In this document: positions 1,150 to 64,000 of the stretch, one piece after another
Position numbering within the stretch: the stretch's first letter is position 1
Layout: every line of letters begins with the position of its first letter
Origin: Malacoraja senta
Taxonomy: Eukaryota
DNA length: 64,000 bases
Assembly: GCA_038087875.1 (NCBI GenBank)
Contig: JAXLNO010001453.1
Location: 1-64,000, forward strand
Reading direction: 5' to 3'
The notes under the pieces: model-generated
Databases searched by the model: none
What the model was told of the DNA's origin: nothing
Seen by the model: the letters and a program-made list of their open reading frames with translations, nothing else
Position numbers and translations under genes: made by a program

Positions 1150-2038
1150 TGAACTTGTTGGCGATTGTGATCCTGTCCCGCAGAAATTGTGGTCTCTCAA
1201 AATGCACCACTCGTTACCTGGTGGCCATGGCGGCGGTGGACCTCTCAGTGATTGGCTGCGAAGTGATATTACATCGGATTGCCGACGTTTACTGGTGGCG
1301 CACATTCTTATTCCACAATACTGTGTGCAGGTGCATTATGTTCCTCGCTCCCGCCGCCGTTGCCTGTTCGGTTTGGCTCACGGTCGCTTTCACATTTGAT
1401 CGCTTTGTGGCCATTTCCACTCAGAATCTGAGAACCAGATACTGCACCGAAAGAACCGCGGTGGTGGTTATAGTGACCCTAACTGCGTTGTTCTGTTTAC
1501 AGAACGCTCCCTGGCCGTTTGCGTACACTTATTATCTCAGAGATCAGCAGGGTATACAGTGGGGTTGCCGAATACCATATCACTTTTATGTCCTGCCCTA
1601 TCAACAGCTGCTAATCCCAGTCATTCCATTTTGTTTGATTATGCTGATGAACGTGCTCACAGTCAGACGCATTTTAGTGGCCAGTCGTGTCCGCAGAAAA
1701 CTCCGCGATCTCAGTAGTGAGGACCCCGAGATCCCAAACCGCAGACGGTCCGTAATTTTACTCCTTGCAATTTCCAGCTGTTTTATGCTGCTCTGGGGCA
1801 CAAATGTGGCATTTTTCGTTTTCTATCGATGTACGCATTTTGGTTCAGGGGGTTGAAGAACCGATTTGCAACATTTGAACAAACTGGAATTATGCTACAA
1901 CTGTTGAACACCTGCACAAACACGCTCATTTCCACCGTGACCCAGAGGAGGTTCAGAGAGCAGCTGCTCCAGGTACTCAAATGCCCCTTCACCCTAACTG
2001 TAAGCTTATTAAAATCGAGAAAACATGGCGTAAAATAA
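1150..2038 (+). pseudogene. GPR139/142-like class A GPCR pseudogene (exon 2 only)
   Basis: Acceptor ...ctcccccag at 1149. Paralogous to 23033-23946 but with a net 21-bp deletion (PSWIAFSWTQQ to PYQQ), a 4-bp frameshift deletion near 1835 and NTLIY to NTLIS. The intron upstream of 684 is replaced by CR1. Confidence 0.92.
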
Positions 2039-3164
2039 AATTACAATACTAATCCCTTCCAGAGTGCAAAAACTAGGTAATGAAGCAGTTTCCTCTAAAA
2101 TCTTTCCTCATCAATTTTCATAAAAATAGCTGGGAAATACAATCTGAACCCGTCCCCTGCACTGCAATGCATATTTGGCCATCTATTTAACATGCGAAAC
2201 GGGCGCGTTGTTCAAAATGTCCAGTGGGGAGGGCGGCCCTGTGGAACCGAGTGCTATGTTGTACTGGAGCAGACCTCCAATGATTCCGGAATTGAGCCTC
2301 GCCGTTAACTGTTTTCACCTTCCTTTGAATCCAGCGGCAACGTCTCCAGCACGCAATGAAAACAGACATAGAGTTATGGTCCTAAACAGTGCATGCTCCA
2401 TTGCTCTACAATTCTTTAAGACGTTCCATGGTTACGTATGTAAGTGCCCAGTGTACAAATGTATTTAATAAAACTCTTGCTGCAACATTTACGTTAATGA
2501 GAGTTCGATTTTATTTTTGCTTCTCGCACTGAATGTAACGCCTCATTGCTTCTTACAGAGGCTTTCGGTTTTCATTACAATTATTAACTCTGCACCAGAT
2601 GCACCAAAGGTAGTGGGTGCTATTCATACAAGTTGGCATTACTAATAATATTTTTAATTCAAGCAGAGTGTAACAAGCGAGTGTCCAGTAGAGGGCGGTA
2701 AAGTGAGTACGTTCACCTGTGTGGTAAAGAGATTCTGAATCGATTTGCATTAATGTCCCACCTCCATTGAAGCTGCGCCGACGCTGGAGATCTGCCAATT
2801 TGAGATTCGAGGGAGTGCTCAGAGAGTAGGATTTAACTCCGCCTGCAGGGCAAGGAAATGTGAGAAATCCATTAATTTATTTCCTCCACCGATGGCGGCT
2901 GAGATTTTGTATAGCTCTAAATTTGGGTTGAGTACTCTCTCCCCACATCCTCCGCTCCCGACGCGGTAACGATTACATTTTTACATATTCTGATTGACAT
3001 TTTCCCCTCGAGGCCGAAAACACCTTCACTGAACATTTTATGCTTTATTTCTTGACTTATTAACGATTAAAGGTAAGTAAGAAGTTTAAAAACATCAAAA
3101 GGCTTTGAATTTAAAACGACCAGCTGCAACTGATGACGTCACAATGGCTCGGCTAGCAGTGGTC

Positions 3165-3935
3165 AGCTTCACTTACTGTTGTGGGACGTATCACTGATGG
3201 GGACGACAGAGTATAGAAGAGAGATCGAACGACTGTCCATATGGTGCCAACACAATAACCTGGCCCTCAACGCCAGCAAAACCAAGGAACTGATTGTGGA
3301 ATTTGGAAAGATTAGGATGGGGACCCACAATCCCGTTAATGTCAACGGGTCGATAGTTGAAAGGGTCAAGAGCTTCAAATTCCTGGGTGTGCTCATCTCT
3401 GAAGACCTTTCCTGGTCCGAGAACACTGATGCAATTAATAATAAAGCACATCAGCGCCTCTACTTCCTGAGAAGATTACGGGCAGTCAGTTTGTCAAGGA
3501 GGACTCTCCCTTACTAATACAGGTGAACAGTAGGGAGCATGCTGACCGGTTGCATCGTGGCTTGGTTCGGCAACTTGAGCGTACTGGAGAGGAAAAGAGT
3601 ACAAAACGTAGTAAATACTGCCCAGTCCATCATCGGCTCCCTTCCATCGAGGGGATCCATCGCAGTCGCTGCCGCAAAAAGGCTGGCAGCATCATCAAGG
3701 ACCCACACTATCCGGGCCACACACTCATCTCCCCGCTACCTTCAGGTAGAAGGTACAGGAGCCTGAAGACTGCAACAACCAGGTTCAGCAAAAGCTACTT
3801 CCGCACAGCCATCAGGCTATTAAACTCGGCTCGGACAAAACTCTGAACATTAATAGCCCATTACCTGTTTATTTGCACTTTATCAGTTTACTTATTCATG
3901 TGTGTATACATTTATATAATGCTATATGGACACAC
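3165..3935 (+). mobile_element. Rex1/Babar-like LINE, 3' fragment
   Basis: WCQHNNLALNASKTKELIV..VERVKSFKFLGV..KAHQRLYFLRRLR followed by PLPSGRRYRSLKT.TTRFSKSYF; contains frameshifts. Confidence 0.82.
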
Positions 3936-5819
3936 TGATAGACATAGTAATATAGAAACATAGAAAATAGGTGGAGGAGGAGGCCATTCGGCCCTTCGAG
4001 CCATCACCGCCATTCGTTGTGTTCATGGCTGATCGTCCCCTATCAATAACCCGTGCCTGCCTTCTCCCCATATCCCTTGACTCCATTAGCCCCTAGAGCT
4101 CTATCCAACTCTCTATTAAATCCATCCAGTGATTTGGCCTCCACTGCCCTCTGTGGCAGGGAATTCAATAAATTCACAACTCTCTGGGTGAAAACGGTTT
4201 TTCTCACCTCAGTCTTAAATGACCTCCCCTTTATTCTGAGACTGTGGCCCCTGGTTCTGGACTCGCCCAACATTGGTAATATTTTTCCTGCATCTAGCTT
4301 GTCCAGTCCTTTCATAATTTTACATGTTTCTATAGGATGCCGCCTCATCCTTCGAAACTCCAGTGAATACAAGCCTAGTCTTTTCAATCTTTCCTCATAT
4401 AACAGTCCCGCCATCCCAGGGATCAATCTGGTGAACCTACGCTGCACTGCCTCAATCACAAGGATGTCCTTCCTCAAATTTGGAGACCAAAACTGTGCAC
4501 AATACTCCAGATGTGGTCTCACCAGACCCTATACAACTGCAGAAGAACCTCTTTACTCCTATACAGAAATCCTCTTGTTATGAATGCCAACATTCCATTA
4601 GCTTTCTTCACTGCCTGCTGTACCTGCACGTCAACTTTCAGTGACCGGTGCACAAGGACGCCCAGGTCTTGCTGTACCACCCTCTTACCTAACCTAACCC
4701 CATTGAGATGATAATCTGCCTCCTTGTTTTTGCCGCCAAAGTGGATAACATCACATTTATCTATATTATACTGCATCTGCCACGCCTCTGCCCACTCACT
4801 CAACCTGTCCATGTCACCCTGCATCCTCCTAACATCCTCTTTATAGTTCACACTGCCAACCAGCTTTGTGTCATCCGCAAACTTACTACGTTGCTCCTAA
4901 TTCCGTCTTCCAAATCATTAATATATATGGTAAACAGTTGCGGCCCCAACACCGAGTCTTGCCGCACTCCACTCGCCACTGCCTGCCATTATGAAAAGGA
5001 CCCGGTCACTCCTACTCTTTGCTTCCGGTCTGCCAACCAATTTTCTATCCATGTCAACACCCTACCCCCAAACCATGTGCTCTAATCTTAGTCACCAGTC
5101 TCCCATGCGGGGCCGTATCAAAGGCTTTCTGAAAGTCTAGATACACTACATCCAGTTGGATCCCTTCATCCATTTTACTTGCCACATCCTCAAAAAATTC
5201 CAGAAGATTAGTCAAGCATGATTTCCCTTTCATAAATCTATTTTCACTAGGACTAATCCTTTTACTGCTATCCAAATGCCCCATTATTACCTCTTTAATA
5301 ATTGACTCCAGCATCTTTCCCACCACCGAAGTCAGGCTAACTGGTCTGTAATTCCCCGTATTCTCTCTCGCTCTTTTCTTGAAAAGTGGGATAACATTAG
5401 CTATCCTCCAATCCACAGGAACTGATCCTGAATCTATTGATCATTGGAAAATGATCACCAATGCGTCCACTATTTCTAGAGCCACCTCCCTGAGGACCCT
5501 GGGAAGCAGACCATCAGGCCCAGGGGATTTATCTTCCTTCAGTCCCATTAGCCAACCCAATACTATTTCACGCCTAATGAATATTTCTTTCAGTTGCTCT
5601 ACCCCCTTAGATCCTCTGTCCTCCAGTACATCTGGGAGATTGTTTCTGTCTTCCTTAGTAAAGACAAATCCAAAGTACCTGTTCAACTCTTCTTCCATTT
5701 CCTTGTGCCCATAATAATTTCACCCGTGTCTGCCTTCAAGGGACCCACATTTGACTTTGCTACTATTTTCCCCTTAACATATCTTAAGAAGCTTTTTTTA
5801 CTGTCCTTCTGTATATTCC

Positions 5820-6545
5820 TTTTTTTTTTGATTAATATTTTTATTAGAAGCAAACATCTTATAAAGTATAGTAACATATTATAATAGAAAATAAACTTTT
5901 CATATACATCAATCATACATTATTAAAATTGTCAATTGTCGATTAATTCTGCTTCTAGTGTTTTTTTTATATAGATAGAAAAAGAGAGGTAGAAAGAAAA
6001 AAGCATTACAAATATCGAAAAAAAAGAGGTGGAATAAGTTACTTATAATACGTCATTGGAGATAAGTTCGTAGTTATGAACTATAATTTTACATCTAATC
6101 CTGAGTTCAAGCTTCTGTTGGGTTTTCGTGCTGGGCCCATCTATCCCTTCAAATAGTTAATGAATGGAGCCCATATTTTAACAAAAAGTTCTTGTTTGTC
6201 CATTAAGACAAGTCTAATTCTTTCTAGATGTAGGGTCTCCGACATTTCCACAATCCACATTTTAATTGTGGGGGTTATAGGACCTTTCCAAAATTTTAAT
6301 ATGAATTTTCTCCCAGTTATTATACTGTAGTCAAGGAAGTTTCTTTGGCTTGTTGTGAGTGTTAAACTTTGTTCTGATATCCCAAGTATTATTAATTTTG
6401 AGTCTGGATCCAATTTAGTATTAACAATTTCAGAAATTATTTCAAAAACATCAATCCAGAAATTTTTGATTTTTATACAATTTGCAAAAGTATGTGTTAA
6501 ATTGGCCTCTAGATGTAGGCATTTATCCTATATAATGATAAATAC
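5820..6545 (-). mobile_element. L1-clade LINE, 3' fragment with poly(A), nested in CR1
   Basis: Poly-T at 5820-5829. ORF 6141-6413 (GRKFILKFWKGPITPTIKMW..ETLHLERIR) is homologous to the C-terminus of the 1263-aa ORF2 at 37967 (GKKLILKFWKNAPTPTIKMW..ETLHLEEMR). Confidence 0.88.
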
Positions 6546-7715
6546 CTTCCGGCTACTCTTTGCTGTGTTATACATCTTTTCTTTTAGTTATATTCTATCT
6601 CTAACTTCTTTTGTCAACCACGGTTGCCTCCTAACCCCCTTAGAATCTTTCTGCCTTTATGGAATGAAATGATCCTGCGTCTTCCGGATTATGCCCAGAA
6701 ATTCCTACCATTGCTGTTCCACCGTCATTCCTGCTAGGATCCCCATCCTGTCTACTTTGGTCAGCTCTCCTCTCATGCCTTCATAGTCCCCTTTGTTCAA
6801 CTGCATCACTGCCACTTCCGATTTTACGTTCTCCTTCTCAAATTGCAGATTAAAACTAATCATATTATGATCACTACCACCAAGCGGTTCCTTTACCTCG
6901 AGTTCTCTTATCATAACTGGTTCACTGGACAGCACTAAATCCAGAATTGCCTTTTCTCTGGTGGGCTCCATTACAAGCTGCTCTAAGAATCCATCTCGGA
7001 GGCATTCTACAAACATCTATTTCTTGGGGTCCTGAACCAACCTGATTTTACCAGTCTACCTGCATATTGAAATCCCCCATCACCACAGTGGAATTACCTT
7101 TGTTACATGCCAGTTTTAACTCCTGCTGCAACTTACACCCTGCATCTGGGCTACTATTTGGGGATCTGTAAATAACACCAATTCGTGTCTTCTTGCCTTT
7201 GCAATTCATCAACTCAATCCACAGTGACTCTACCTCGTCAGTCTATATGTGTTCCCTCGCAAGGGTCTGAATTCCCTCCCTCACCAGCAAAGCTACCCCC
7301 CTCCTCTGCCCACCTGCTACCCCCCACCTCTGCCCACCTGCCTGTCCTTTCTATAGGATGTATAACCCTGAATATTAAGTTCCCAGGCCCTATCCTCCTG
7401 CAGCCATGTCTCAATAATCCCCACAATGTCATATCTACCAACCCCTAACTGAGCCTCAAGCTCATCTACTGTACTTCTTATACTTCGCGCATTCATATAC
7501 AATACTTTTAATTCCTTACGCATCTCACCTTTCACATCGATCCCTATTACAATTGGCCATACTCTCCTATCCCTTTGTGAGCTTACCTTCCCGTTAATTC
7601 TGGGGTCATTAACCATCCCTTTACTCTCTTTCCCTTTAACTCCATCCTCGACTATCCCATTTGACACCCCACCCACCTTATTCAGTTTAAAACCACCCGT
7701 GTAGCAGTGGCAAAC

Positions 7716-9465
7716 TGCTTTCAACAGATTTGACTGCCCCACACCACCCCAGTCTCCCCCACCTGGTCTGCTGACCATTGCTGCTTCCTCTCCACCTCCC
7801 CTCCCTCTCTCCATCGTCTCCATCACTCCTGAGATGTCACCTGTGCGGAATCCCCTCTTTCCACCTCCCATTCCACCAGCAGCCCCACCTATGACTCTTC
7901 ATACTGCTCAGGTCAAGATGATGCTGGACAGACTGAAGCCAGGGAAAGCAGTGGGGCCTGATGACACCAGCCGAAGGCTACTGAAGACCTGCTCTTCAGA
8001 GCTGTGTGGTATTGTAACACACCTGTCCAACCTGAGCTTGCGTCTACAGAAGGTTCCAAGGCTGTGGAAAACATCTTGCCTGGTACCTGTCCCAAAGAAG
8101 ACCCATCCCACTCACCACAATGACTACAGACCAGTAGCGCTCACTTCACGTATTATGAAGACATTTGAGAGATTTGTCCTTTCCTACATCAGGACTAGTG
8201 TGTCAAATCAAATGGATCCTTTACAGTTTGCATATCAGCCTAACAACAGTGTCGATGATGCCCTCATTTACATGCTGCAGAGGGTGTACACACATTTGGA
8301 CACTACTGATGCATCTGTAAGGATTAAGTTTTTTGACTTCTCAAGCGCCTTCAACACAATTCATCCCCGACTGCTAGTGGAGAAGATGGAGAAGATGAAA
8401 GTGGATCCATCACTGGTACTGTGGTGTTTGGATTACCTTTCCCTCAGACCACAGTACGTGCGCCTACAGAACAACAATGTCTCAAGCACCATCTTGAGCA
8501 GCACAGGGGCTCCACAAGGAACTGTGCTGGTTCCATTCCTGTTTACCATCTACACAGCGGATCTCCGATATAATACCAACAGCTGCTTTTTGCAGAAATT
8601 TTCGGATGACACAGCTGTTGTCGGCCTCATTAAAGGGGGCAATGAGGAGGAGTATAGAGACATGATAAGTAACTTTGTGGAGTGGAGTGCACCCAATTAC
8701 CTCCTTCTTAACACCACAAAAACCAAGGAGATAGTTGTGGACTTCAGGAGGGGGAGGAGAAGGACTCAAGCAACACCAATCACCATTAAGGTGGAGGTGG
8801 TCGCTAACCACAGGTACCTTGGTGTGCAGCTTGACAGTGAGCTGGACTGGAAGTGTAATATGGAGGCGGTGTACAGGAAGGGACAAAGCCGACTGCATTT
8901 TTTAAGGAGGCTGAGGGCATTTAACATCTGCCAACCCCTACTGTGCAGTGTCTACCATTCAGTGGTGGCCAGTGCTCTGTTTTTTGCGGTGGCCTGTTGG
9001 GGAGATGGCGCCCGCATAGCGGACAAAAACAGGCTGGACAAGCTGATCAGGAAGGCCGGCTCAGTGGTCGGGGCTGAGCAACGAACGGTCCAGCAGGTGG
9101 CAGAGGCCAGAACTCTCAACAAACTGGGTTCTATAATGACCAACCCCACTCACCCACTCCATGCCCTGAAGGTGATCAAGAGCAGCATCTTCAGTCAGAG
9201 ACTGATTGCACCAATGTGCAAAACTGACAGACATAGGAAGTCCTGTTTACCAGCTGCTATAAGGTTATATAATGCGCATAAATAACTGCACTTTTTTATT
9301 CTTTAATTGTATTTTAACTTGTATGTTAACTTGCATTTTAACTTGTTAAGTATGGCAGCTATTTGAGGAAATGTGTGGTGTTATGTCTGTCTTGAAGCTG
9401 TCGTGGCACTGTAATTTCCTGCAAAGGATTATTAAAGGTATAATCAATCAATCAATCAATCAATC
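7716..9465 (+). mobile_element. Rex1/Babar-like LINE, 5'-truncated, with an open RT frame (7834-9285), nested in CR1
   Basis: DPLQFAYQ..VDDAL..FFDFSSAFNTI..GAPQGTVLVPFLF..FSDDTAVVGLI; (TCAA)n tail at 9441-9465. Host CR1 sequence gtggcaaac/ctgcctgccag is rejoinable across the insertion. Confidence 0.9.
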
Positions 9466-11261
9466 GAACCTGCCTGCCAGAATGCGGATCCCTCACCTGT
9501 TAAGATGCAATCCGTTCCTTTTGTACAGCCCCCCTTACTCCAAAACAGATCCCAGTGATCTAAGAATCTAAATCCCTGCCCCCTGCACCAGTTCCTCAGC
9601 CACACATTCAGGTCCCGTACCTCCCTGTTTCTGCTCTCGCCAGCACGAGGAAGTGGAAGCAAACCGGAGATAACAACTCTGGATGTCCTGCTTTTCAGCA
9701 TTTTTCCGAGCTCTCTAAAGTGACGCTGCAGAATATTCATCCCCTTCTTTCCGAGGTCGTTTGTGCTGACATGCACTACCACTTCCGGCTGTTCACCTTC
9801 GCCCTTGAGGATTTTCTGCACTCTGTCCGTGACATCCTGCATCCTGGCACCAGGAAGGCAGCACACCATCCTCGAATCCCGTCTATTGCCGCAGAAACCC
9901 CTGTCCGTACCTCTCACAATGGAGTCTCCAACTACAATGGCGTTGTCTGACGTTGGCCTCTTTGGATTTGGCTCAACAGCCCTTTTTGCTTCGCAAGCCA
10001 GCGCGCCGCTCAGTGTGATAACGTATTCTGTCCCGACAGCTTTTAAGTGGGTGAACCTGTTCACAAGATGTACAACACCCGGGGACGTTTGCATTCCATG
10101 TTTCCCTCCCTTTCTCACCGTCACCCACCTTCTCTCTTCCAGTACCTTACATGTAACAATCGTACTGTAGGAAAAGGAACGACTCAGTTTCTCGGACGAA
10201 CCTGAGGTCATCCACTTGCTTCTCCAGTTCCCCAACACTGTCCTTCACGAGCTGTACCTGGATGTACTTCTCACATTTGTAGCAGCGGTGTCCTTGACCT
10301 CCCACATACTGAAAGCATCACACTGAATCAGCTTACCTGATGTGTCCTTATTTCGTCTCTCCCTCTCCAGCGTTTTGCGTAGCCTCCTCTCCTCAGCCTG
10401 CTCGCCGAAGACTCTCGAGGCAAAGACTCACACATTTCTCACAGGGCACTTCACTCACAAGGCCGCTCACTCACTGCCGCTCCCTAAGAGCCGTCTTGCT
10501 TATATTGACTGATAAATTATCTTTGTTGCAGTTGCTTCAAAATCCACGGGAGCTCTGAGTAAAGTCTGCCTGTGCTTTGCCTCTCCTTTTCAACTCTTTT
10601 CCCCTCTGACTCACTTCTACCTCTCCTCCCACTCGGGCTAGAGCCAATCAGTGTTTTCTCCTGATCTGTTCTGTAGTCATGTCTACTATGTTCTGATGTG
10701 CTGAAGAAAAGCAAGAATGTCATTGTCCTATCAGGGACACATGACAATAAATTCTCTTGAATGTTGAATCTTGAATGATCACATTGAATGGCGGTGTTGG
10801 CTCGAAGGGCCGAATGGCCTACTCCTTCGCCGATTGACTATTGAAAAGGAGCTAATCAGCCACTCTCCAACTCCGTCTTATATGCAGGACCTTCTCTCTC
10901 TGCTTCCAGACCCATAAACTAATTTACTGCACAAACACATGTGTTACTTTTTAAGCTAGGGGGCTAGACTGTTGCAAGTAAATTAACAGGCACAATCCTC
11001 GGCAACGTGCAGGCTCAGCTATCGTTTCGTTGAACACCTCCGCTCAATTCGCCTAAAATTGCTTGATCTCCCGCTTACTAAACACTTTAACTCCCCCTTC
11101 CATTCCACACTGACCTCTCTGTGCTGGGTCTCCTGCATTGTTGGAGGAGTCAAAATTGTCCCCTCTTACTTTTTGCTCGAATCTGCTTGACAACGTACCC
11201 TGCTTCTGCAAAGTATTTTACACTTCAACCGCGTGGAGAGTTTACGAATAGCCACGGCGTT

Positions 11262-11694
11262 TTTAAAACCCTTGCCTCCCGGTTCCTCCTCATTCTGTTG
11301 CTCAAACTGCAGACGGTCACACAAACCCTGGCGGTCAGTTAAGCCCGCGGGAGACTGCGGGGTGAGAACAATGGAGCAAACAGTGAGCTAGCAATGAAGA
11401 ACAGAGGAATGTACTGGTGGCAATCTAGTGAAGCTGTATCCTGTTGCGTTCGCCTTACCTTGTAAATGTTATTGTTGTAAAAGTTACAAGCATTAGCTGT
11501 GCTAGCCGGTTTAATGCCACTGGTCCAATGTTTATCCTCCAAGAAAGTGGATGCATGCTGGTGCTTCTGAACTCCTGCACCAACTCGTGCATTTATGAAG
11601 GGCGCAGACCAAATTCCGAGAGTAGTTGAAGAATACGGCTAAATACCCGCTGGGTCTATTTAGTCGAATGTTTACATATTGTGAACGTCTCTAA
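11262..11694 (+). pseudogene. Ancient GPR139-like GPCR relic (TM5 to helix 8), a divergent paralogue
   Basis: FLLILLLKLQTVTQTLAVS*ARGRLRG (TM5/ICL3), ESGCMLVLLNSCTNSCIY and the KYPL tail match TGIMLQLLNTCTNTLIYTVTQRRFREQL..FPF of the intact gene. Contains stops and indels. Confidence 0.75.
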
Positions 11695-19160: not shown

Positions 19161-19181
19161 GTGTATGGAGCATGCTGCCAG

Positions 19182-22019: not shown

Positions 22020-22092
22020 TAGCGCGGTTTGACTTCTCACTTTGACTTCTGTAAGTTTTGAACGGCATAACTGGGTACGGCTTGACGGAGAA

Positions 22093-52424: not shown

Positions 52425-53195
52425 CTTCACTTACTGTTGTGGGACGTATCACTGATGGGGACGACAGAGTATAGAAGAGAGATCGAACGACTGTCCATAT
52501 GGTGCCAACACAATAAACCTGGCCCTCAACGCCAGCAAAACCAAGGAACTGATTGTGGAATTTGGAAAGATTAGGATGGGGACCCACAATCCCGTTAATG
52601 TCAACGGGTCGATAGTTGAAAGGGTCAAGAGCTTCAAATTCCTGGGTGTGCTCATCTCTGAAGACCTTTCCTGGTCCGAGAACACTGATGCAATTAATAA
52701 TAAAGCACATCAGCGCCTCTACTTCCTGAGAAGATTACGGGCAGTCAGTTTGTCAAGGAGGACTCTCCCTTACTACTACAGGTGAACAGTATGGAGCATG
52801 CTGACCGGTTGCATCGTGGCTTGGTTCGGCAACTTGAGCGTACTGGAGCGGAAAAGAGTACAAAACGTAGTAAATACTGCCCAGTCCATCATCGGCTCCC
52901 TTCCATCGAGGGGATCCATCGCAGTCGCTGCCGCAAAAAGGATGGCAGCATCATCAAGGACCCACACTATCCGGGCCACACACTCATCTCCCCGCTACCT
53001 TCAGGTAGAAGGTACAGGAGCCTGAAGACTGCAACAACCAGGTTCAGCAAAAGCTACTTCCGCACAGCCATCAGGCTATTAAACTCGGCTCGGACAAAAC
53101 TCTGAACATTAATAGCCCATTACCTGTTTATTTGCACTTTATCAGTTTACTTATTCATGTGTGTATACATTTATAGAATGCTATATGGACACACT
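52425..53195 (+). mobile_element. Rex1/Babar-like LINE, 3' fragment (duplicate of 3165-3935)
   Basis: Near-identical to copy A. Confidence 0.82.
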
Positions 53196-55076
53196 GATAG
53201 ACATAGTAATATAGAAACATAGAAAATAGGTGGAGGAGGAGGCCATTCGGCCCTTCGAGCCATCACCGCCATTCATTGTGTTCATGGCTGATCGTCCCCT
53301 ATCAATAACCCGTGCCTGCCTTCTCCCCATATCCCTTGACTCCATTAGCCCCTAGAGCTCTATCCAACTCTCTATTAAATCCATCCAGTGATTTGGCCTC
53401 CACTGCCCTCTGTGGCAGGGAATTCAATAAATTCACAACTCTCTGGGTGAAAACGGTTTTTCTCACCTCAGTCTTAAATGACCTCCCCTTTATTCTGAGA
53501 CTGTGGCCCCTGGTTCTGGACTCGCCCAACATTGGTAATATTTTTCCTGCATCTAGCTTGTCCAGTCCTTTCATAATTTTACATGTTTCTATAAGATGCC
53601 GCCTCATCCTTCGAAACTCCAGTGAATACAAGCCTAGTCTTTTCAATCTTTCCTCATATAACAGTCCCGCCATCCCAGGGATCAATCTGGTGAACCTACG
53701 CTGCACTGCCTCAATCACAAGGATGTCCTTCCTCAAATTTGGAGACCAAAACTGTGCACAATACTCCAGATGTGGTCTCACCAGACCCTATACAACTGCA
53801 GAAGAACCTCTTTACTCCTATACAGAAATCCTCTTGTTATGAATGCTAACATTCCATTAGCTTTCTTCACTGCCTGCTGTACCTGCACGTCAACTTTCAG
53901 TGACCGGTGCACAAGGACGCCCAGGTCTTGCTGTACCACCCTCTTACCTAACCTAACCCCATTGAGATGATAATCTGCCTCCTTGTTTTTGCCGCCAAAG
54001 TGGATAACATCACATTTATCTATATTATACTGCATCTGCCACGCCTCTGCCCACTCACTCAACCTGTCCATGTCACCCTGCATCCTCCTAACATCCTCTT
54101 TACAGTTCACACTGCCAACCAGCTTTGTGTCATCCGCAAACTTACTACGTTGCTCCTAATTCCGTCTTCCAAATCATTAATATATATGGTAAACAGTTGC
54201 GGCCCCAACACCGAGTCTTGCCGCACTCCACTCGCCACTGCCTGCCATTATGAAAAGGACCCGGTCACTCCTACTCTTTGCTTCCGGTCTGCCAACCAAT
54301 TTTCTATCCATGTCAACACCCTACCCCCAAACCATGTGCTCTAATCTTAGTCACCAGTCTCCCATGCGGGGCCGTATCAAAGGCTTTCTGAAAGTCTAGA
54401 TACACTACATCCAGTTGGATCCCTTCATCCATTTTACTTGCCACATCCTCAAAAAATTCCAGAAGATTAGTCAAGCATGATTTCCCTTTCATAAATCCAT
54501 GTTGACGGACTAATCCTTTTACTGCTCTCCAAATGCCCCATTATTACCTCTTTAATAATTGACTCCAGCATCTTTCCCACCACCGAAGTCAGGCTAACTG
54601 GTCTGTAATTCCCCGTATTCTCTCTCGCTCTTTTCTTGAAAAGTGGGATAACATTAGCTATCCTCCAATCCACAGGAACTGATCCTGAATCTATTGATCA
54701 TTGGAAAATGATCACCAATGCGTCCACTATTTCTAGAGCCACCTCCCTGAGGACCCTGGGAAGCAGACCATCAGGCCCAGGGGATTTATCTTCCTTCAGT
54801 CCCATTAGCCAACCCAATACTATTTCACGCCTAATGAATATTTCTTTCAGTTGCTCTACCCCCTTAGATCCTCTGTCCTCCAGTACATCTGGGAGATTGT
54901 TTCTGTCTTCCTTAGTAAAGACAAATCCAAAGTACCTGTTCAACTCTTCTTCCATTTCCTTGTGCCCATAATAATTTCACACGTGTCTGCCTTCAAGGGA
55001 CCCACATTTGACTTTGCTACTATTTTCCCCTTAACATATCTTAAGAAGCTTTTTTTACTGTCCTTCTGTATATTCC

Positions 55077-55803
55077 TTTTTTTTTTGATTAATATTTTTA
55101 TTAGAAGCAAACATCTTATAAAGTATAGTAACATATTATAATAGAAAATAAACTTTTCATATACATCAATCATACATTATTAAAATTGTCAATTGTCGAT
55201 TAATTCTGCTTCTAGTGTTTTTTTAATATAGATAGAAAAAGAGAGGTAGAAAGAGAAAAGCATTACAAATATCGAAAAGAAAGAGGTGGAATAAGTTACT
55301 TATAATACGTCATTGGAGATAAGTTCGTAGTTATGAACTATAATTTTACATCTAATCCTGAGTTCAAGCTTCTGTTGGGTTTTCGTGCTGGGCCCATCTA
55401 TCCCTTCAAATAGTTAATGAATGGAGCCCATATTTTAACAAAAAGTTCTTGTTTGTCCATTAAGACAAGTCTAATTCTTTCTAGATGTAGGGTCTCCGAC
55501 ATTTCCACAATCCACATTTTAATTGTGGGGGTTATAGGACCTTTCCAAAATTTTAATATTAATTTTCTCCCAGTTATTATACTGTAGTCAAGGAAGTTTC
55601 TTTGGCTTGTTGTGAGTGTTAAACTTTGTTCTGATATCCCAAGTATTATTAATTTTGAGTCTGGATCCAATTTAGTATTAACAATTTCAGAAATTATTTC
55701 AAAAACATCAATCCAGAAATTTTTGATTTTTATACAATTTGCAAAAGTATGTGTTAAATTGGCCTCTAGATGTAGGCATTTATCCTATATAATGATAAAT
55801 ACC
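55077..55803 (-). mobile_element. L1 3' fragment nested in CR1 (duplicate of 5820-6545)
   Basis: ORF 55398-55670 and poly-T at 55077. Confidence 0.88.
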
Positions 55804-56967
55804 TTCCGGCTACTCTTTGCTGTGTTATACATCGTTTCTTTTAGTTATATTCTATCTCTAACTTCTTTTGTCAACCACGGTTGCCTCCTAACCCCCTTAG
55901 AATCTTTCTGCCTTTATGGAATGAAATGATCCTGCGTCTTCCGGATTATGCCCAGAAATTCCTACCATTGCTGTTCCACCGTCATTTCTGCTAGGATCCC
56001 CATCCTGTCTACTTTGGTCAGCTCTCCTCTCATGCCTTCATAGTCCCCTTTGTTCAACTGCATCACTGCCACTTCCGATTTTACGTTCTCCTTCTCAAAT
56101 TGCAGATTAAAACTAATCATATTATGATCACTACCACCAAGCGGTTCCTTTACCTCGAGTTCTCTTATCATAACTGGTTCACTGGACAGCACTAAATCCA
56201 GAATTGCCTTTTCTCTGGTGGGCTCCATTACAAGCTGCTCTAAGAATCCATCTCGGAGGCATTCTACAAACATCTATTTCTTGGGGTCCTGAACCAACCT
56301 GATTTTACCAGCCTACCTGCATATTGAAATCCCCCATCACCACAGTGGAATTACCTTTGTTACATGCCAGTTTTAACTCCTGCTGCAACTTACACCCTGC
56401 ATCCGGGCTACTCTTTGGGGATCTGTAAATAACACCAATTCGTGTCTTCTTGCCTTTGCAATTCATCAACTCAATCCACAGTGACTCTACCTCGTCAGTC
56501 TATATGGGTCGCAAGGGTCTGAATTCCCTCCCTCACCAGCAAAGCTACCCCCCTCCTCTGCCCACCTGCTACCCCCCTCCTCTGCCCACCTGCCTGTCCT
56601 TTCTATAGGATGTATAACCCTGAATATTAAGTTCCCAGGCCCTATCCTCCTGCAGCCATGTCTCAATAATCCCCACAATGTCATATCTACCAACCCCTAA
56701 CTGAGCCTCAAGCTCATCTACTGTACTTCTTATACTTCGCGCATTCATATACAATACTTTTAATTCCTTACGCATCTCACCTTTCACATCGATCCCTATT
56801 ACAATTGGCCATACTCTCCTATCCCTTTGTGAGCTTTCCTTCCCGTTAATTCTGGGGTCATTAACCATCCCTTTACTCTCTTTCCCTTTAACTCCATCCT
56901 CGACTATCCCATTTGACACCCCACCCACCTTATTCAGTTTAAAACCACCCGTGTAGCAGTGGCAAAC

Positions 56968-58726
56968 TGCTTTCAACAGATTTGACTGCCCCACACCACC
57001 CCAGCCTCCCCCACCTGGTCTGCTGACCATTGCTGCTTCCTCTCCACCTCCCCTCCCTCTCTCCATCGTCTCCATCACTCCTGAGATGTCACCTGTGCGG
57101 AATCCCCTCTTTCCACCTCCCATTCCACCAGCAGCCCCACCTATGACTCTTCATACTGCTCAGGTCAAGATGATGCTGGACAGACTGAAGCCAGGGAAAG
57201 CAGTGGGGCCTGATGACACCAGCCGAAGGCTACTGAAGACCTGCTCTTCAGAGCTGTGTGGTATTGTAACACACCTGTTCAACCTGAGCTTGCGTCTACA
57301 GAAGGTTCCAAGGCTGTGGAAAACATCTTGCCTGGTACCTGTCCCAAAGAAGACCCATCCCACTCACCACAATGACTACAGACCAGTAGCGCTCACTTCA
57401 CGTATTATGAAGACATTTGAGAGATTTGTCCTTTCCTACATCAGGACTAGTGTGTCAAATCAAATGGATCCTTTACAGTTTGCATATCAGCCTAACAACA
57501 GTGTCGATGATGCCCTCATTTACATGCTGCAGAGGGTGTACACACATTTGGACACTACTGATGCATCTGTAAGGATTACGTTTTTTGACTTCTCAAGCGC
57601 CTTCAACACAATTCATCCCCGACTGCTAGTGGAGAAGATGGAGAAGATGAAAGTGGATCCATCACTGGTACTGTGGTGTTTGGATTACCTTTCCCTCAGA
57701 CCACAGTACGTGCGCCTACAGAACAACAATGTCTCAAGCACCATCTTGAGCAGCACAGGGGCTCCACAAGGAACTGTGCTGGTTCCATTCCTGTTTACCA
57801 TCTACACAGCGGATCTCCGATATAATACCAACAGCTGCTTTTTGCAGAAATTTTCGGATGACACAGCTGTTGTTGGCCTCATTAAAGGGGGCAATGAGGA
57901 GGAGTATAGAGACATGATAAGTAACTTTGTGGAGTGGAGTGCACCCAATTACCTCCTTCTTAACACCACAAAAACCAAGGAGATAGTTGTGGACTTCAGG
58001 AGGGGGAGGAGAAGGACTCAAGCAACACCAATCACCATTAAGGGCACTGAGGTGGAGGTGGTCGCTAACCACAGGTACCTTGGTGTGCAGCTTGACAGTG
58101 AGCTGGACTGGAAGTGTAATATGGAGGCGGTGTACAGGAAGGGACAAAGCCGACTGTATTTTTTAAGGAGGCTGAGGGCATTTAACATCTGCCAACCCCT
58201 ACTGTGCAGTGTCTACCATTCAGTGGTGGCCAGTGCTCTGTTTTTTGCGGTGGCCTGTTGGGGAGATGGCGCCCGCATAGCGGACAAAAACAGGCTGGAC
58301 AAGCTGATCAGGAAGGCCGGCTCAGTGGTCGGGGCTGAGCAACGAACGGTCCAGCAGGTGGCAGAGGCCAGAACTCTCAACAAACTGGGTTCTATAATGA
58401 CCAACCCCACTCACCCACTCCATGCCCTGAAGGTGATCAAGAGCAGCATCTTCAGTCAGAGACTGATTGCACCAATGTGCAAAACTGACAGACATAGGAA
58501 GTCCTGTTTACCAGCTGCTATAAGGTTATATAATGCGCATAAATAACTGCACTTTTTTATTCTTTAATTGTATTTTAACTTGTATGTTAACTTGCATTTT
58601 AACTTGTTAAGTATGGCAGCTATTTGAGGAAATGTGTGGTGTTATGTCTGTCTTGAAGCTGTCGTGGCACTGTAATTTCCTGCAAAGGATTATTAAAGGT
58701 ATAATCAATCAATCAATCAATCAATC
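56968..58726 (+). mobile_element. Rex1/Babar-like LINE (duplicate of 7716-9465), RT frame 57086-58546
   Basis: 486-aa RT ORF and (TCAA)n tail. Confidence 0.9.
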
Positions 58727-60523
58727 GAACCTGCCTGCCAGAATGCGGATCCCTCACCTGTTAAGATGCAATCCGTTCCTTTTGTACAGCCCCCCTTACT
58801 CCAAAACAGATCCCAGTGATCTAAGAATCTAAATCCCTGCCCCCTGCACCAGTTCCTCAGCCACACATTCAGGTCCCGTACCTCCCTGTTTCTGCTCTCG
58901 CCAGCACGAGGAAGTGGAAGCAAACCGGAGATAACAACTCTGGATGTCCTGCTGTTCAGCATTTTTCCGAGCTCTCTAAAGTGACGCTGCAGAATATTCA
59001 TCCCCTTCTTTCAGAGGTAGTTTGTGCTGACATGCACTACCACTTCCGACTGTTCACCTTCGCCCTTGAGGATTTTCTGCACTCTGTCCGTGACATCCTG
59101 CATCCTGGCACCAGGAAGGCAGCACACCATCCTCGAATCCCGTCTATTGCCGCAGAAACCCCTGTCCGTACCTCTCACAATGGAGTCTCCAACTACAATG
59201 GCGTTGTCTGACGTTGGCCTCTTTGGATTTGGCTCAACAGCCCTTTTTGCTTCGCAAGCCAGTGCGCCGCTCAGTGTGATAACGTATTCTGTCCCGACAG
59301 CTTCTAAGTGGGTGAACCTGTTCACAAGATGTACAACACCCGGGGACGTTTGCATTCCATGTTTCCCTCCCTTTCTCACCGTCACCCACCTTCTCTCTTC
59401 CAGTACCTTACATGTAACAATCGTACTGTAGGAAAAGGAACGACTCAGTTTCTCGGACGAACCTGAGGTCATCCACTTGCTTCTCCAGTTCCCCAACACT
59501 GTCCTTCACGAGCTGTACCTGGATGTACTTCTCACATTTGTAGCAGCGGTGTCCTTGACCTCCCACATACTGAAAGCATCACACTGAATCAGCTTACCTG
59601 ACGTGTCCTTATTTCGTCTCTCCCTCTCCAGCGTTTTGCGTAGCCTCCTCTCCTCAGCCTGCTCGCCGAAGACTCTCGAGGCAAAGACTCACACATTTCT
59701 CACAGGGCACTTCACTCACAAGGCCGCTCACTCACTGCCGCTCCCTAAGAGCCGTCTTGCTTATATTGACTGATAAATTATCTTTGTTGCAGTTGCTTCA
59801 AAATCCACGGGAGCTCTGAGTAAAGTCTGCCTGTGCTTTGCCTCTCCTTTTCAACTCTTTTCCCCCTCTGACTCACTTCTACCTCTCCTCCCACTCGGGC
59901 TAGAGCCAATCAGTGTTTTCTCCTGATCTGTTCTGTAGTCATGTCTACTATGTTCTGATGTGCTGAAGAAAAGCAAGAATGTCATTGTCCTATCAGGGAC
60001 ACATGACAATAAATTCTCTTGAATGTTGAATCTTGAATGATCACATTGAATGGCAGTGTTGGCTCGAAGCGCCGAATGGCCTAGTCCTTCGCCGATTGTC
60101 TATTGAAAAGGAGCTAATCAGCCACTCTCCAACTCCGTCTTATCTGCAGGACCTTCTTTCTCTGCTTCCAGACCCATAAACTAATTTACTGCACAAACAC
60201 ATGTGTTACTTTTTAAGCTAGGGGGCTCGACTGTTGCAAGTAAATTAACAGGCACAATCCTCGGCAACGTGCAGGCTCTGCGATCGTTTCGTTGAACACC
60301 TCAGCTCAATTCGCCTAAAACTGCTTGATCTCCCGCTTGCTAAACACTTTAACTCCCCCTTCCATTCCACACTGACCTCTCTGGGCTGGGTCTCCTGCAT
60401 TGTTGGAGGAGTCAAAATTGTCCCCTCTTACTTTTTACTCGAATCTGCTTGATAACGTACCCTGCTTCTGCAAAGTATTTTACACTTCAACCGCGTGGAG
60501 AGTTTACGAATGGCAACAGCGTT

Positions 60524-60963
60524 TTTAAACCCCTTGCCTACCGTTCCTCCTCATTCTGTTGCTCAAACTGCAGACGGTCAGACAAACCCTGGCGGTCAAT
60601 AGAGCCCGCGGGAGACCCCGGGCTGAGAATAATGGAGCAAACAGTGAGCTAGCAATGAAGAACAGAGGAATGTCCATCATCTTACTGATGGCAATCTAGT
60701 GAAGCTGTATTGTGTTGCGTTCGCCTTACCTTGTAAATGTTATATTTGTAAATGTTACAAGCATTAGCTGTGCTAGCCGGTTTAATGCCACTGATCCAAA
60801 GTTTAACCTCCAAGAAAGTGGATGCATTCTGGTGCTTCTGAACTCCACCAACTCGTGCATTTATGAAGGGACGCAGACCAAATTCCGAGAGTATTTGAAG
60901 AATACGGCTAAATACCCCCTGGGTCTATTTAGACGAATGTTTACATATTGTGAACGTCTCTAA
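60524..60963 (+). pseudogene. Ancient GPR139-like GPCR relic (duplicate of 11262-11694)
   Basis: One frame from 60601: RARGRPRAENNGANSELAMKNRGMSIILLMAI**SCIVLRSPYLVNVIF...QESGCILVLLNSTNSCIYEGTQTKFREYLKNTAKYPL*, covering ICL3, TM6, TM7 and helix 8. Confidence 0.8.
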
Positions 60964-61954
60964 AGTAAGCGGGTGATTTACATTTTTATTTTCACTAACA
61001 CAGTTAATGCGAGTGAACTCATAAGGGAGGGTGTTATATGGTGATATGGTTATGTCATTGGGGCAGTCAAGAAGACCTGTAGAATATTTCGAGCTAAATT
61101 TCCATGAAAGTTTACCTATATATCATGTTCACTCTTTTCAGCGAATGCCGACGGTATTGGGCAGAAAATAATTTGTTTGGGGCAATTATTTGTAGTGAAT
61201 CTAATAGGATGCGGTGTTGCTTCAGTGGGGAAGGAGGGAACTAGTTGCAGTTCTATACGTGACCGCGCGAGGGCGCGTTCCTCTTAGAACTGGTACTTCA
61301 CAGTTGCATCCGATGAAATCAGTGCTTCGTTGTATTGTCTTCGAGTAACACATCTAGTACCTGTTCTTTTACACAAAGACCCCCTATAGAAATTTAAATC
61401 TCTGGTAAAATAAAATTTTAATGGCACAAAGCAAGGCCACTAATCAAGTCATTCTGCTGTCTATTAAATTGGACTTAGATATTCCTGTTTTATACCAATG
61501 TCATTAGAATCGACGTCTGAGATTTTCTTCATTTTACTCCATGTTACATTGTGCAGCTTATTGTGATGCAATGAAGCCCGGGTAACTGATCGTATAGATG
61601 TAGACCCTATTTTCTTAGAAGCATGCTGTTCACATGCTGGAAGTACATTGTTGGAACAAACTCATCTCGTTTGTGATTGCAAATAAAATGTGACGGCCCA
61701 GATATTTAACTTTCTATTATTTTAATTGGGACAATGGAATGAGGCAGGAATATACAGTGGAAAGCCTTGTTTCACACCGGGCCATGAGCTTTTCTGGTAT
61801 TTCTGTTCCGGGCACTCCCAATTCTATGTCCCGTAATACACTGTCAGGACTCGTTACATGTGGACCCCGGCTCCCTCCGTCCAGCCTCATCAAAAACATT
61901 TCCATTCAATTCCCCCATGGATCACATTCAGCGACTTTGTTTCAAGTCATAAAA

Positions 61955-62490
61955 TGATAGAAATTGGCCTCCACTGCTTTCTCAGGCAGCGAATTCCACT
62001 CCGAGTGAAAAAGGTTTCCCTCATCTCCGTTCGAAATAGCCTACACCTTGTTCTTAAACTATGGCCCCTAGTTCTGGACTCTGTCAACATCGGGAACATG
62101 GTTCCTGCCTCCATCGTGTCCAATCCCTTAATAATATTTTATGTTTCAATAAGATCCCCTCTCATCTTACTAAATTCCAGCGTATACAAGCCCATCCGCT
62201 CGATTCTATCCACATATGACTGTCCCGCCATCCCGGGAATTAACATCGTGAACGTACGGTGCACTCCTTCAATATCTAGAGTGCCGTTCCTCAAATCTGG
62301 AGACAAAAACTGCACACAATACTCCAGGGGTGGTCTCTTTAGGGCTCTGAACAACTACAGAAGGACCTCTGGCTCCTTTACTCAATTCCTCTTGTTATGA
62401 TGGCCAACGTGCAATTAGCTTTCTGCACTACTCCTGTACCTGCATGCTTACTTTCAGTGAGTGATGAACAAGAACCCCCAGGTGATACCC
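61955..62490 (-). mobile_element. CR1 3' fragment (duplicate of 13066-13600; tail deleted)
   Basis: ORF 62139-62354 RPPLEYCVQFLSPDLR. About 370 bp present in copy A is missing at ~61955. Confidence 0.8.
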
Positions 62491-62666
62491 ATCACCTTCT
62501 CAAGTACAAAGGTTTCCCTCCCGTTCCTGTTAAATATTTCCCCTCACACCTTTAACCTAATTCCTCTGGTTCTTGATTCTCCAACTCTGGGTAAAGGACA
62601 ATGTGCATTCACGTTCTCCAATCCGCTAATGTTTTCATACACTCAGCCTCCAGCGCTCAAGAGATC

Positions 62667-62956
62667 AGAGATCCGCCGTGGAAACAGGCCATTCGTCCCA
62701 CAGAATCCGAGCTTACCAACGATCACCAACAGTAGCACTATCCTGCAAGCTAGAGACAAGGTACAATTTGCAGACGTTAAAAATAAACCATATTTCTGTA
62801 CATATTTCTAGTCTGGGAGGGAACCGGAACACCCGGAGAAAACCCAGGCAGTCATCAGGAGAACTTGCAAAATCGCTACTGACAGCACCGTACTCAGGTT
62901 CTAATCCGGGTGCCTGACACTGCAAGGGAGCAACTCTACCGCTACGACACGATGCC
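62667..62956 (-). mobile_element. HE1-like SINE (duplicate of 13781-14070)
   Basis: Colinear with copy A. Confidence 0.75.
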
Positions 62957-63878
62957 GCCTAATTTAGTCCTACCCAGCTCAACCGATCCTTTTTGCGTAG
63001 TCGCTCGAGGGAGTATAGTAGAGCTGTGATATGGAACACCCTTCTAGTGAAGGGGTTGTCATGTTGCTGTTGTGGGGGAATTCCCAGACTATAGCGATGC
63101 AGAGAAGTAATTCAGTACCGGCTCATTGAGCAAAAACAGTAATTACTGCTTTAAGGTATTTGCATATTTGTGCAGTCGCCCACTGGGAAAGGCACCAGGC
63201 GTATTTAAAGTGTTTAATTTTACTGCCCTCACGTGACTATCCATCAAGGGCTTTACTTTAGCAGTTGCTGTAGCTACGCATCTGGTGTCCAGTGATATAT
63301 CCAGCGACTCAGATCTGGATTACTCAGCAGGGCCCAATGGCGAACTACCCATCTATATTACTGGTAATCCGCCATTTGCGGTGGTATATTTTGGTTTATA
63401 GACTTCCTATTCTTCCCGAGTCCCGGACGATTTTGCTGCTATTAGTAAAGGCCAATCACTACCTGAAATTAGAAAGTCTGTCAGGGTGTCGGTAAAGTGG
63501 AATTGGTTAACGTAATTCTGACAATTCCGGGCCAGCCCATCCTCCATCCAGTGACACCCACGGTTCTATAATTAAAACAGATAATTCTGCAGTTATTAAA
63601 CAGGTTATCCAGGACCGAGAGAAAGTGAAACAGAACAAACGTTTCAGATCTCTGGTCACATTTCCTATCCCGCTGCCAAGTGTCGTAAGAGCTCTTGTAA
63701 TTCTCTGCAGCTATTGGCTAATGATATGGAAACGGATTCCGGAGAAGCAGCTCGCAGTTGGAAACAATCAAACCACCAGGACACCTGCACAGAATGAAAG
63801 CAAACCGACAACTGAGAGAGAAGAGTAAAGCAGGCACATCCAACCGCATCAGCGGAGCAGAGAACAAGACAACGGCGA

Positions 63879-63916
63879 TGTTTTTGTAAGGGGCTTAACT
63901 TGTTCCCATCACTGTG
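63879..63916 (-). other. V(D)J RSS, 22-bp spacer (second copy)
   Basis: cactgtg at 63910-63916 and tgtttttgt at 63879-63887; two spacer substitutions relative to copy A. Confidence 0.95.
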
Positions 63917-64000
63917 CGCCTCAGTGCGCAGTAATAGACTGCAGAGTCGCTGAGATCCAGCCCTGAGATACTCAAACTGGTGAACTTAGTCGCTGTATTG
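63917..64000 (-). CDS. TRAV/TRDV: TCR alpha/delta-type V segment, 3' end (FR3; the rest is beyond the window)
   Basis: NTATKFTSLSISGLDLSDSAVYYCALR; these 84 bp are identical to 15031-15114. Confidence 0.88.

Follow-up and report, generated by a model that had tools for sequence, protein, structure and literature searches.

Mammalian TRAV and IGHV arrays contain tandem segmental duplication blocks with gene conversion. At the 5′ end of the mammalian TRA/TRD locus, olfactory receptor (OR) genes lie among the TRAV1/TRAV2 segments, OR10G2 and OR4E2 in human and Olfr1507-1509 in mouse (PMC4574546). For elasmobranchs, a recent article describes a complex in which IgH, IgL, UrIg2 and NAR-TCR are linked to TCR alpha/delta, and in which V exons are numerous, NAR-TCR V are present and cassettes have been duplicated (Sci Adv 2025, PMC12227049); GPCR genes receive no mention in its main text. 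The window analysed here (the whole 64-kb stretch, Malacoraja senta contig JAXLNO010001453.1, positions 1-64,000, forward strand) contains TCR alpha/delta-type V sequence interleaved with a lineage-specific class A GPCR family. The initial annotation had proposed this interleaving and pointed to the mammalian OR precedent, and both points are borne out. The locus is probably the product of nested segmental duplication in a batoid TCR alpha/delta-type V array interleaved with an orphan GPCR family, the two being co-duplicated passively.

A young direct repeat occupies both ends of the window, with an offset of 48.9–49.4 kb between its copies. Self-BLAST aligns 14.6 kb in three colinear blocks, in direct orientation within one uninterrupted sequence: 1-1627 with 49359-50985 (99.5% identity), 1725-12695 with 50984-61959 (98.4%) and 13062-15114 with 61959-64000 (95.7%). 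Copy 2, visible for 14.6 kb only before the window ends, is missing two stretches of copy 1, one of 99 bp (at 50983) and one of 368 bp (at 61959). The MAFFT mismatch between the copies is 0.43% over 1-10790, ~5.5% over 10790-14000 and ~2% over 14000-15114. Divergence of the left part, 0.3–0.4%, lies inside the range of allelic differences. The mosaic of 0.4% and 2–5.5% divergence implies at least two events, a duplication followed by either gene conversion or unequal crossover. Little skate is at the same distance (9–12%) from each copy, which places both events within the Malacoraja senta lineage.

An older ~22-kb duplication lies inside the 49-kb unit, in which 684-2197 matches 22566-24109 at 93% identity; a second pair of blocks, upstream of the GPCR positions, is listed in the table. 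The upstream block of GPCR B also matches little skate (L002 6406-8306) at 85%. No second V belongs to this older duplication, the B unit being without one, and what remains of it per 49 kb is a single live GPCR with a single V. ORFs of LINE origin (RT, endonuclease, esterase) occur throughout the unit. The LINE-derived block common to both young copies is absent from the little skate unit, where L002 positions 12472 and 12508, matching window positions 3176 and 10852, are adjacent. The 49-kb unit is nested and mosaic; the ~49-kb tandem unit of the initial annotation stands as a direct repeat, but not as a simple one.

Coordinates of the features in the window
Feature	Position	Strand	Details
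Young direct repeat, copy 1	1-15114		left end cut by window; self-BLAST, MAFFT
GPCR pseudogene A1	1134-2035	+	exon-2 homologue only; tblastn 86% identity to P0001
LINE-derived insertion block	3176-10852		both young copies; RT and esterase ORFs
Old GPCR relic R1	~11190-11680	+	TM5-TM7 only; tblastn matches 11348-11673; homologue of R2
V1, TRAV/TRDV-like germline V gene segment	14993-15496	-	split leader, open V-exon, RSS
V1 nonamer	15001-14993	-	22-nt spacer to heptamer
V1 heptamer	15030-15024	-	
V1 V-exon	15337-15031	-	open, with Cys/Trp/YYC
V1 intron	15450-15338	-	113 nt, GT-AG
V1 L-part1	15496-15451	-	46 nt
GPCR B upstream block	20362-21796		older duplicate of 42415-43859; 90% identity, offset 22053
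GPCR B exon 1	22093-22162	+	23 codons + 1 nt, donor G/GTAGGT (slash: exon end)
GPCR B exon 2	23033-23946	+	acceptor AG 23031-23032
LINE ORF2	37967-41758	+	1263 aa, uninterrupted; endonuclease and reverse transcriptase
A2-unit upstream block	42415-43859		older duplicate of B upstream block; exon 1 missing after it
LINE fragments	44661-49528		RT/EN ORFs in both orientations; separate A2 from its upstream block
Young direct repeat, copy 2	49359-64000		right end cut by window; self-BLAST, MAFFT
GPCR pseudogene A2	50440-51294	+	lesions of A1, 1-bp deletion (50655), 99-bp deletion
Old GPCR relic R2	~60448-60939	+	three in-frame stops; 40% identity to P0004 residues 217-383
V2	63880-64000	-	RSS and last 28 V-exon codons; remainder beyond window end

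GPCR B is the live copy of the unit. Its spliced product of 327 aa is intact, with TM1 coming mostly from exon 1, which holds an EYYYYPILA motif common to P0003 and P0010. Exon 2 matches Pfam 7tm_1 (E 4.8e-16, profile positions 2-260), its AlphaFold model is helical and GPCR-like (pTM 0.73), and TM-scores to class A receptors are 0.65–0.76; profile and modelled fold together predict a class A (rhodopsin-like) receptor. A dN/dS of 0.50 against the little skate copy, and of 0.27–0.50 across five comparisons, indicates that GPCR B is under moderate purifying selection. Three of the four GPCR copy positions in one period are dead. A1 still matches 7tm_1 (E 2.9e-13), and the A copies remain 93–95% identical to B. 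A1 and A2 have in common a 21-bp in-frame deletion, a 4-bp frameshift (both relative to B) and the loss of exon 1, so A was dead before the young duplication. The old relic is reduced to TM5-TM7, with three stops and 35–40% identity to family members.

The period content described in the initial annotation holds in part. RSS-bearing V, recent GPCR pseudogene and old relic are present in both visible copies, on the opposite strands claimed, and the start codons of V1 (15496) and GPCR B (22093) are indeed head-to-head, 6.6 kb apart. An intact GPCR for each period is seen in one period only, since the window cuts copy 2 off after 14.6 kb, and V2 is partial. That both families expand together is correct insofar as the young duplication carries V and GPCR sequences together, but it is overstated, for the GPCR sequence visibly copied with the V is an already-dead copy and a relic.

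The V segments carry the two RSSs of the window, both on the minus strand (14994-15030 and 63880-63916: CACAGTG, 22-nt spacer, ACAAAAAC), against none in 100 shuffles of the sequence. The RSS directly follows the V-exon and is of the 23-bp spacer class, one base short (CACAGTG, 22 nt, ACAAAAACA). The 28 residues of V2 are identical to those of V1, and its RSS spacer differs at two positions. V1 matches the Pfam V-set (E 9.5e-14), and C26, W39 and C98 are invariant in an alignment with 25 relatives. Its structure model (pLDDT 88) finds TRAV14/DV4, TRAV38-1, TRAV38-2/DV8 and TRDV1 as the best four Swiss-Prot fold matches, and its nearest Atlas clusters are TCR alpha/delta V, with a small margin over Ig lambda/VpreB in both fold and sequence. 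V1 is TRAV/TRDV-like, closer to this group than to V segments of any other kind. The 64-kb window contains neither D nor J nor C elements, and the probable assignment of the array to the TRA/TRD locus rests on V similarity and on the neighbours in other species.

The comparison with other cartilaginous fishes supplies those neighbours. Little skate locus L002 is colinear with the window from A through V1 to B, in the order GPCR-V-GPCR, and is itself tandem with a period of 15.8 kb. A little skate V is 90% identical to V1 in amino acids, with the same RSS. The two upstream blocks of L002 are 89.8% identical, above the cross-species identity of 83–85%, as expected of arrays under concerted evolution. 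Independent duplications at the same site could also yield a within-species identity above the cross-species one. Five of the seven batoid loci retrieved (little skate, thorny skate, sawfish) have V exons no more than 10 kb from the GPCR gene, regularly on opposite strands and head-to-head at 6–8 kb. The V-linked GPCR genes all fall in one batoid clade (tree support 100/99), and the adjacency occurs in at least three GPCR sub-lineages. This synteny in three other batoids, observed as directly as the anatomy, common lesions and mosaic divergence of the window, means that the pairing is not a one-off juxtaposition. The term "cartilaginous fish" in the initial annotation is too wide, since two sevengill-shark GPCR loci of the sister clade have no V exon within 10–21 kb. 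L008, from another sub-family of the GPCR family, has no V nearby either. GPCR paralogues in thorny and little skate adjoin NAR-type V domains in double-V gene models; this is the layout of NAR-TCR (TCR delta), and it points to TCR delta.

The GPCR family is very large. A family search gives 1004 hits, of which the best 120 all come from cartilaginous fishes, with dozens per species; it comprises hundreds of members and is confined to cartilaginous fishes among these 120 best hits. NCBI automatic annotation labels the whole family "probable GPR139". The "GPR139-like" of the initial annotation is this database label, which sequence and fold searches do not bear out. Like human GPR139 and GPR142, the skate receptor is predicted to be class A, and GPR139 is among the few solved structures matched in a PDB sequence search (E 4.2e-5). 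Its best match there is the CCK-B receptor (1.2e-5), with galanin R2 further down (1.7e-4). The top 30 Swiss-Prot fold matches are ghrelin, CCK-B, orexin and galanin receptors at 13–21% identity, and neither GPR139 nor GPR142 is among them. With CCK-B scoring slightly higher, GPR139/GPR142 is not the nearest characterised receptor in these searches, and the family is at least as close to the CCK-B, ghrelin and galanin receptors as to GPR139. In place of canonical DRY and NPxxY, the family has D-R-F and N-T-x-I-Y throughout. Across 35 members D84, R85 and Y270 never vary and N266 and T267 hardly do, so that this is a conserved deviation rather than decay. Large lineage-specific tandem expansion with many pseudogenes, the pattern of chemosensory families, is found in this one as well; the chemoreceptor role that the initial annotation proposes is putative. 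To our knowledge, cartilaginous fishes have almost no canonical ORs. No description of this shark and ray receptor family, orphan and very large as it is, was found in the searchable literature, and sensory-organ transcriptomics in catshark report no such receptor family (PMC11979771).

Alternative readings concern the assembly and the identity of the V array. Copy 2 might be the uncollapsed other haplotype of copy 1, with one unit per chromosome. The left 10.8 kb would fit such an artefact, with few indels besides its small mismatch, and immune V arrays are often structurally heterozygous and difficult to assemble. This explanation is quite unlikely, as the remaining 4.3 kb differ by 2–5.5% and by the 368-bp indel, two deletions (1 bp and 99 bp) are peculiar to A2, and little skate independently has the same kind of tandem array. 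The window is also free of N runs and gaps, which puts the two copies on a single unbroken piece of contig, separated by 34 kb of unique sequence. The V array might also lie outside TRA/TRD proper, as a satellite cluster of V segments, an orphon cluster or the V region of a different antigen receptor within a GPCR array. The small margins over Ig lambda/VpreB, the missing D, J and C elements and the location of thorny skate V-linked GPCR genes on two chromosome records (CM021368.1 and CM021380.1) speak for this; but V1, with its split leader, open V-exon, canonical RSS and conservation in little skate, is unlike a decaying orphon, and the top Swiss-Prot matches and Atlas clusters (TRAV, TRAV/DV, TRDV) as well as the NAR-type double-V models stand against it. 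A location outside TRA/TRD is unlikely.

Functional coupling is a further possibility. The GPCRs might be kept in the V array through common regulation, for example the stochastic/monoallelic choice known from olfactory receptors or the opening of chromatin in the thymus, with selection on both families to duplicate together. The adjacency persists in skates and a sawfish across the GPCR sub-lineages, its head-to-head orientation is regular, GPCR B is still under purifying selection, and mammals keep ORs among TRAV1 segments (PMC4574546). Yet a slowly rearranging region would be expected to conserve the adjacency of neighbours anyway, and no shared regulatory element has been identified. The older duplication decoupled the families, so that a V now stands with no live GPCR and a GPCR with no V, and neither the L008 sub-family nor the two sister-clade shark loci have a V nearby. 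Coupling of this kind is very unlikely. A combined reading is likewise highly improbable, namely that the "GPR139"-named family represents undescribed chemosensory or environment-sensing receptors and also that its batoid branch is held in the V array by a common one-gene-per-cell stochastic chromatin choice; if true, chemoreceptors and antigen receptors would have become linked a second time, independently of OR-TRAV in mammals. No observation made here connects the function of the GPCR with the TCR; these look like two unrelated families sharing unstable ground, and the V-GPCR linkage alone is most likely a by-product of neighbourhood.

For nested segmental duplication with passive co-duplication, we infer the following order of events. 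The basic unit consists of a single GPCR gene and, after it on the opposite strand, a single V segment; in little skate this unit is already repeated in tandem at the 15.8-kb period. An older duplication may have given GPCR copies A and B, with the B unit lacking a V, after which A would have lost exon 1 and its reading frame. LINE insertions could then have swelled the A-B pair to ~49 kb, and the whole block would have been copied again. Later gene conversion or unequal crossover may have homogenised at least the first 10.8 kb of both copies. Both families would simply be carried along by the same non-allelic recombination, within a V array that is rich in TEs and prone to recombine.

The skate locus is caught amid block duplication, pseudogenisation and homogenisation. 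It offers a dated natural series for V-array growth (0.4%, ~5%, 7–10% and ~12% to little skate), and draws attention to the very large orphan GPCR family that sharks and rays possess. In the annotation of elasmobranch TCR loci, non-immune genes that are intact are to be expected among the V segments.

The known systems resemble this locus in different respects. As in the mammalian OR/TRAV arrangement, class A GPCRs without a TCR role stand between germline V segments, in an arrangement conserved across species. Mammals have a handful of ORs at one locus edge, whereas in the skate GPCR and V alternate from one unit to the next and block duplication copies them together; this interleaving involves a different and much larger lineage-specific receptor family. 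The skate GPCR matches Pfam 7tm_1 rather than the olfactory model, with peptide-type receptors as its nearest structures, and nothing indicates common descent of the two arrangements. The elasmobranch complex shares the genomic neighbourhood, NAR-type V domains also lying beside skate GPCR paralogues (PMC12227049). By analogy, the tens-of-kb multi-gene direct copies, pseudogenisation and patchy identity would liken the skate block to those of mammalian TRAV and IGHV arrays; unlike them, it contains an unrelated GPCR family in addition to the V.

The initial annotation had assigned to each period one RSS-bearing TCR alpha/delta-type V on the minus strand and, on the plus strand, one intact GPCR, one recent GPCR pseudogene and one old relic. 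RSS, tblastn and splicing evidence shows this inventory to be correct for the one complete period, as is the 6.6-kb head-to-head spacing of the V segment V1 and the intact receptor, GPCR B (15496 to 22093). The strict RSS pattern occurs at exactly two sites in the window, both on the minus strand (14994-15030 and 63880-63916), and at none in shuffled sequence. V1 is a textbook germline V; V2, its partner in the second period, runs off the end of the window; the 28 codons that can be seen match those of V1 exactly, and its RSS differs at two spacer positions. V1 matches Pfam V-set, and its type was assigned from fold and Atlas searches. The closest Atlas clusters bear the names TCR alpha/delta variable and TCR V alpha, and the four best Swiss-Prot fold matches of the structure model (pLDDT 88) are TRAV14/DV4, TRAV38-1, TRAV38-2/DV8 and TRDV1, with Ig lambda and VpreB-type domains close behind TRAV/TRDV. 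Classing by PDB sequence matches alone was dropped; two-domain scFv chains dominate these matches, so they are not discriminating.

Family members used as tblastn queries detect five GPCR pieces in the window, all on the plus strand. The long ORF of B begins immediately after a polypyrimidine tract and AG; exon 1 carries an N-terminal motif also present in relatives, and the spliced product is intact at 327 aa. The dead exon-2 copies A1 and A2 have a 21-bp deletion and a 4-bp frameshift in common, so A was already dead at the time of the young duplication. Private to A2 are a 1-bp and a 99-bp deletion, and an exon 1 for A1 or A2 was sought in the window and not found. The relic comprises TM5-TM7 only, with three stops and 35-40% identity to family members. 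In little skate, the colinear place lacks the 2-kb stretch containing the old relic, 11082-13151: positions 12730 and 12728 of locus L002 directly join its flanks. The relic would have been either deleted in little skate or retained only in this skate.

Features of the window and NAR-type V domains of the comparison loci
Feature	Position	Strand	Details
Copy-1 interval	1 to about 10790		mismatch between copies 0.43%
Copy-1 interval	about 10790 to 14000		mismatch between copies about 5.5%
Copy-1 interval adjoining V	14000 to 15114		mismatch between copies about 2%
GPCR A1	1134-2035	plus	tblastn
GPCR relic, first	about 11190-11680	plus	tblastn
GPCR B exon 1	22093-22162	plus	70 nt, GT donor; codes for missing N-terminus incl. 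EYYYYPILA motif
GPCR B piece	23017-23946	plus	tblastn
GPCR A2	50440-51294	plus	tblastn
GPCR relic, second	60448-60939	plus	tblastn
V1 L-part1	15496-15451	minus	46 nt
V1 intron	between L-part1 and V-exon	minus	113 nt, GT-AG
V1 V-exon	15337-15031	minus	open; conserved Cys, Trp, YYC
V1 RSS	directly after V-exon	minus	heptamer, 22-nt spacer, nonamer
NAR-type V domains, thorny skate L006 (CM021380.1)	7083-7340, 17405-17686, 22919-23176		beside GPCR paralogues
NAR-type V domain, little skate L007	1262-1519		beside GPCR paralogue

Pfam 7tm_1 and the fold of its predicted model place B among the class A receptors. B matches about 1000 relatives; the best 120 come without exception from sharks, rays and a chimaera, and automatic annotation names them 'probable GPR139'. 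This label, which the initial annotation had likewise used ('GPR139-like'), is weak: by sequence, B is about as far from GPR139 as from the CCK-B receptor and galanin R2, and its top 30 fold matches consist of ghrelin, CCK-B, orexin and galanin receptors and include neither GPR139 nor GPR142. A dN/dS of 0.50 against the little skate copy and of 0.27-0.40 against more distant copies points to moderate purifying selection on B. In a 35-member alignment of the family, D-R-F replaces DRY and N-T-x-I-Y replaces NPxxY throughout (B at 23033-23946). The family thus shows a conserved loss of the TM7 proline, which is unusual among class A receptors.

Self-comparison of the window finds 1-15114 repeated directly at 49359-64000, as three colinear blocks (identity 99.5, 98.4 and 95.7%; offsets 49358, 49259 and 48897, respectively). 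The repeat reaches both window ends, so its boundaries and copy number are not readable from the window. The proposed ~49-kb tandem unit thus holds as a repeat at offsets 48897-49358, but the window takes in just 14.6 kb of the second period, and the unit is nested and mosaic. The mosaic divergence of the copies requires at least two events: a duplication first, then a gene conversion or unequal crossover that would have homogenised the left part of the two copies. Both copies are equidistant (9-12%) from the orthologous little skate sequence in every interval, which places both events, the one behind the 5% divergence and the one behind the 0.4%, within this skate's lineage.

An older duplication lies inside the unit. 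Positions 684-2197 and 22566-24109 are 93% identical (exon 2 alone 95.5%), 20362-21796 and 42415-43859 are 90% identical, and both pairs are offset by about 22 kb; A and B are thus duplicates of each other, which makes the unit nested. No V relic was found in the B unit (24-49 kb, tblastn at E 10), so the older duplication never included V or V was later lost. After this event, one unit kept V and lost its GPCR; the other kept its GPCR and has no V.

Much of the remaining unit is LINE material, and little skate lacks a 7.7-kb TE insertion block present in the window (3176-10852). Near 10790, over about 100 bp, divergence between the young copies rises from 0.43% to about 5%, a step that all but coincides with the right edge of this block. 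Within the V-less B unit, a plus-strand LINE ORF2 (37967-41758) is uninterrupted over 1263 aa with endonuclease and reverse-transcriptase domains; the element was possibly active recently. A minus-strand GDSL-lipase/esterase ORF has 260 aa at 9456-10238 and is shortened to 162 aa in copy 2 (59011-59499); domains of this kind occur in ORF1 of some LINE families. In the segment 33332-36727, copies of one repeat family form a nest in both direct and inverted orientation (pieces 83-93% identical); they are related to LINE fragments in other parts of the window.

Little skate L002 is colinear with the A-V1-B part of the window and has a 15.8-kb period: a first GPCR, with its upstream block and both exons, is followed by the counterpart of the stretch downstream of A, then by a V, and then by a second GPCR, represented by its upstream block and exon 1. 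Its V is 90% identical to V1 and has the same RSS. The two upstream blocks within L002 are 89.8% identical, above the cross-species identity of 83-85%, which would fit concerted evolution of the array; independent duplication is the alternative. The cross-species synteny check proposed initially bears out V/GPCR pairs beyond this skate, a V exon lying within 10 kb of a GPCR gene in five of the seven fetched batoid loci (little skate, thorny skate and sawfish). Linkage across cartilaginous fishes, also proposed, is seen in these batoids, but no V is present within 10-21 kb at two sevengill-shark (Heptranchias) loci, which belong to the sister clade. The family tree groups B with all V-linked genes in a single clade restricted to batoids (support 100/99), and the sole gene of this clade lacking a V within 10 kb shares its chromosome with a V-linked member about 66 kb away. 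The V-linked thorny skate genes of this clade occupy two chromosome records, CM021368.1 at about 102.9 Mb (L001/L005) and CM021380.1 at 58.3 Mb (L006), which may reflect two V arrays, translocation of a piece or a problem of the assembly.

One paralogue pair, in thorny and little skate, is adjoined by NAR-type V domains in double-V gene models, and the best single-domain PDB matches of these domains are shark VNAR. To our knowledge, the double-V layout is specific to NAR-TCR, i.e. TCR delta. The interleaving therefore extends to NAR-TCR-type cassettes.

Passive co-duplication is the simplest account of the V-GPCR linkage: a repeat-rich, recombination-prone V array would carry the neighbouring GPCR family along, with the usual decay thereafter. 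A functional link between the GPCR and the TCR V is not supported by anything seen. Copy 2 might instead be an uncollapsed haplotype; this is unlikely, because the copies differ by 2-5.5% over one stretch and carry private deletions, the sequence is gap-free (N runs are absent across the 64-kb window), and little skate has a parallel array.

Literature on cartilaginous-fish GPR139/GPCR expansion, elasmobranch TCR loci and TCR-olfactory receptor linkage, with subscription journals thinly covered, yielded no description of the V-GPCR linkage. GPCRs go unmentioned in the main text of a 2025 paper describing the elasmobranch antigen-receptor complex (PMC12227049), and the olfactory families listed in a recent work on catshark sensory genomics are the four classic ones alone (PMC11979771). 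In mammals, olfactory receptors are documented among TRAV1/TRAV2 (PMC4574546).
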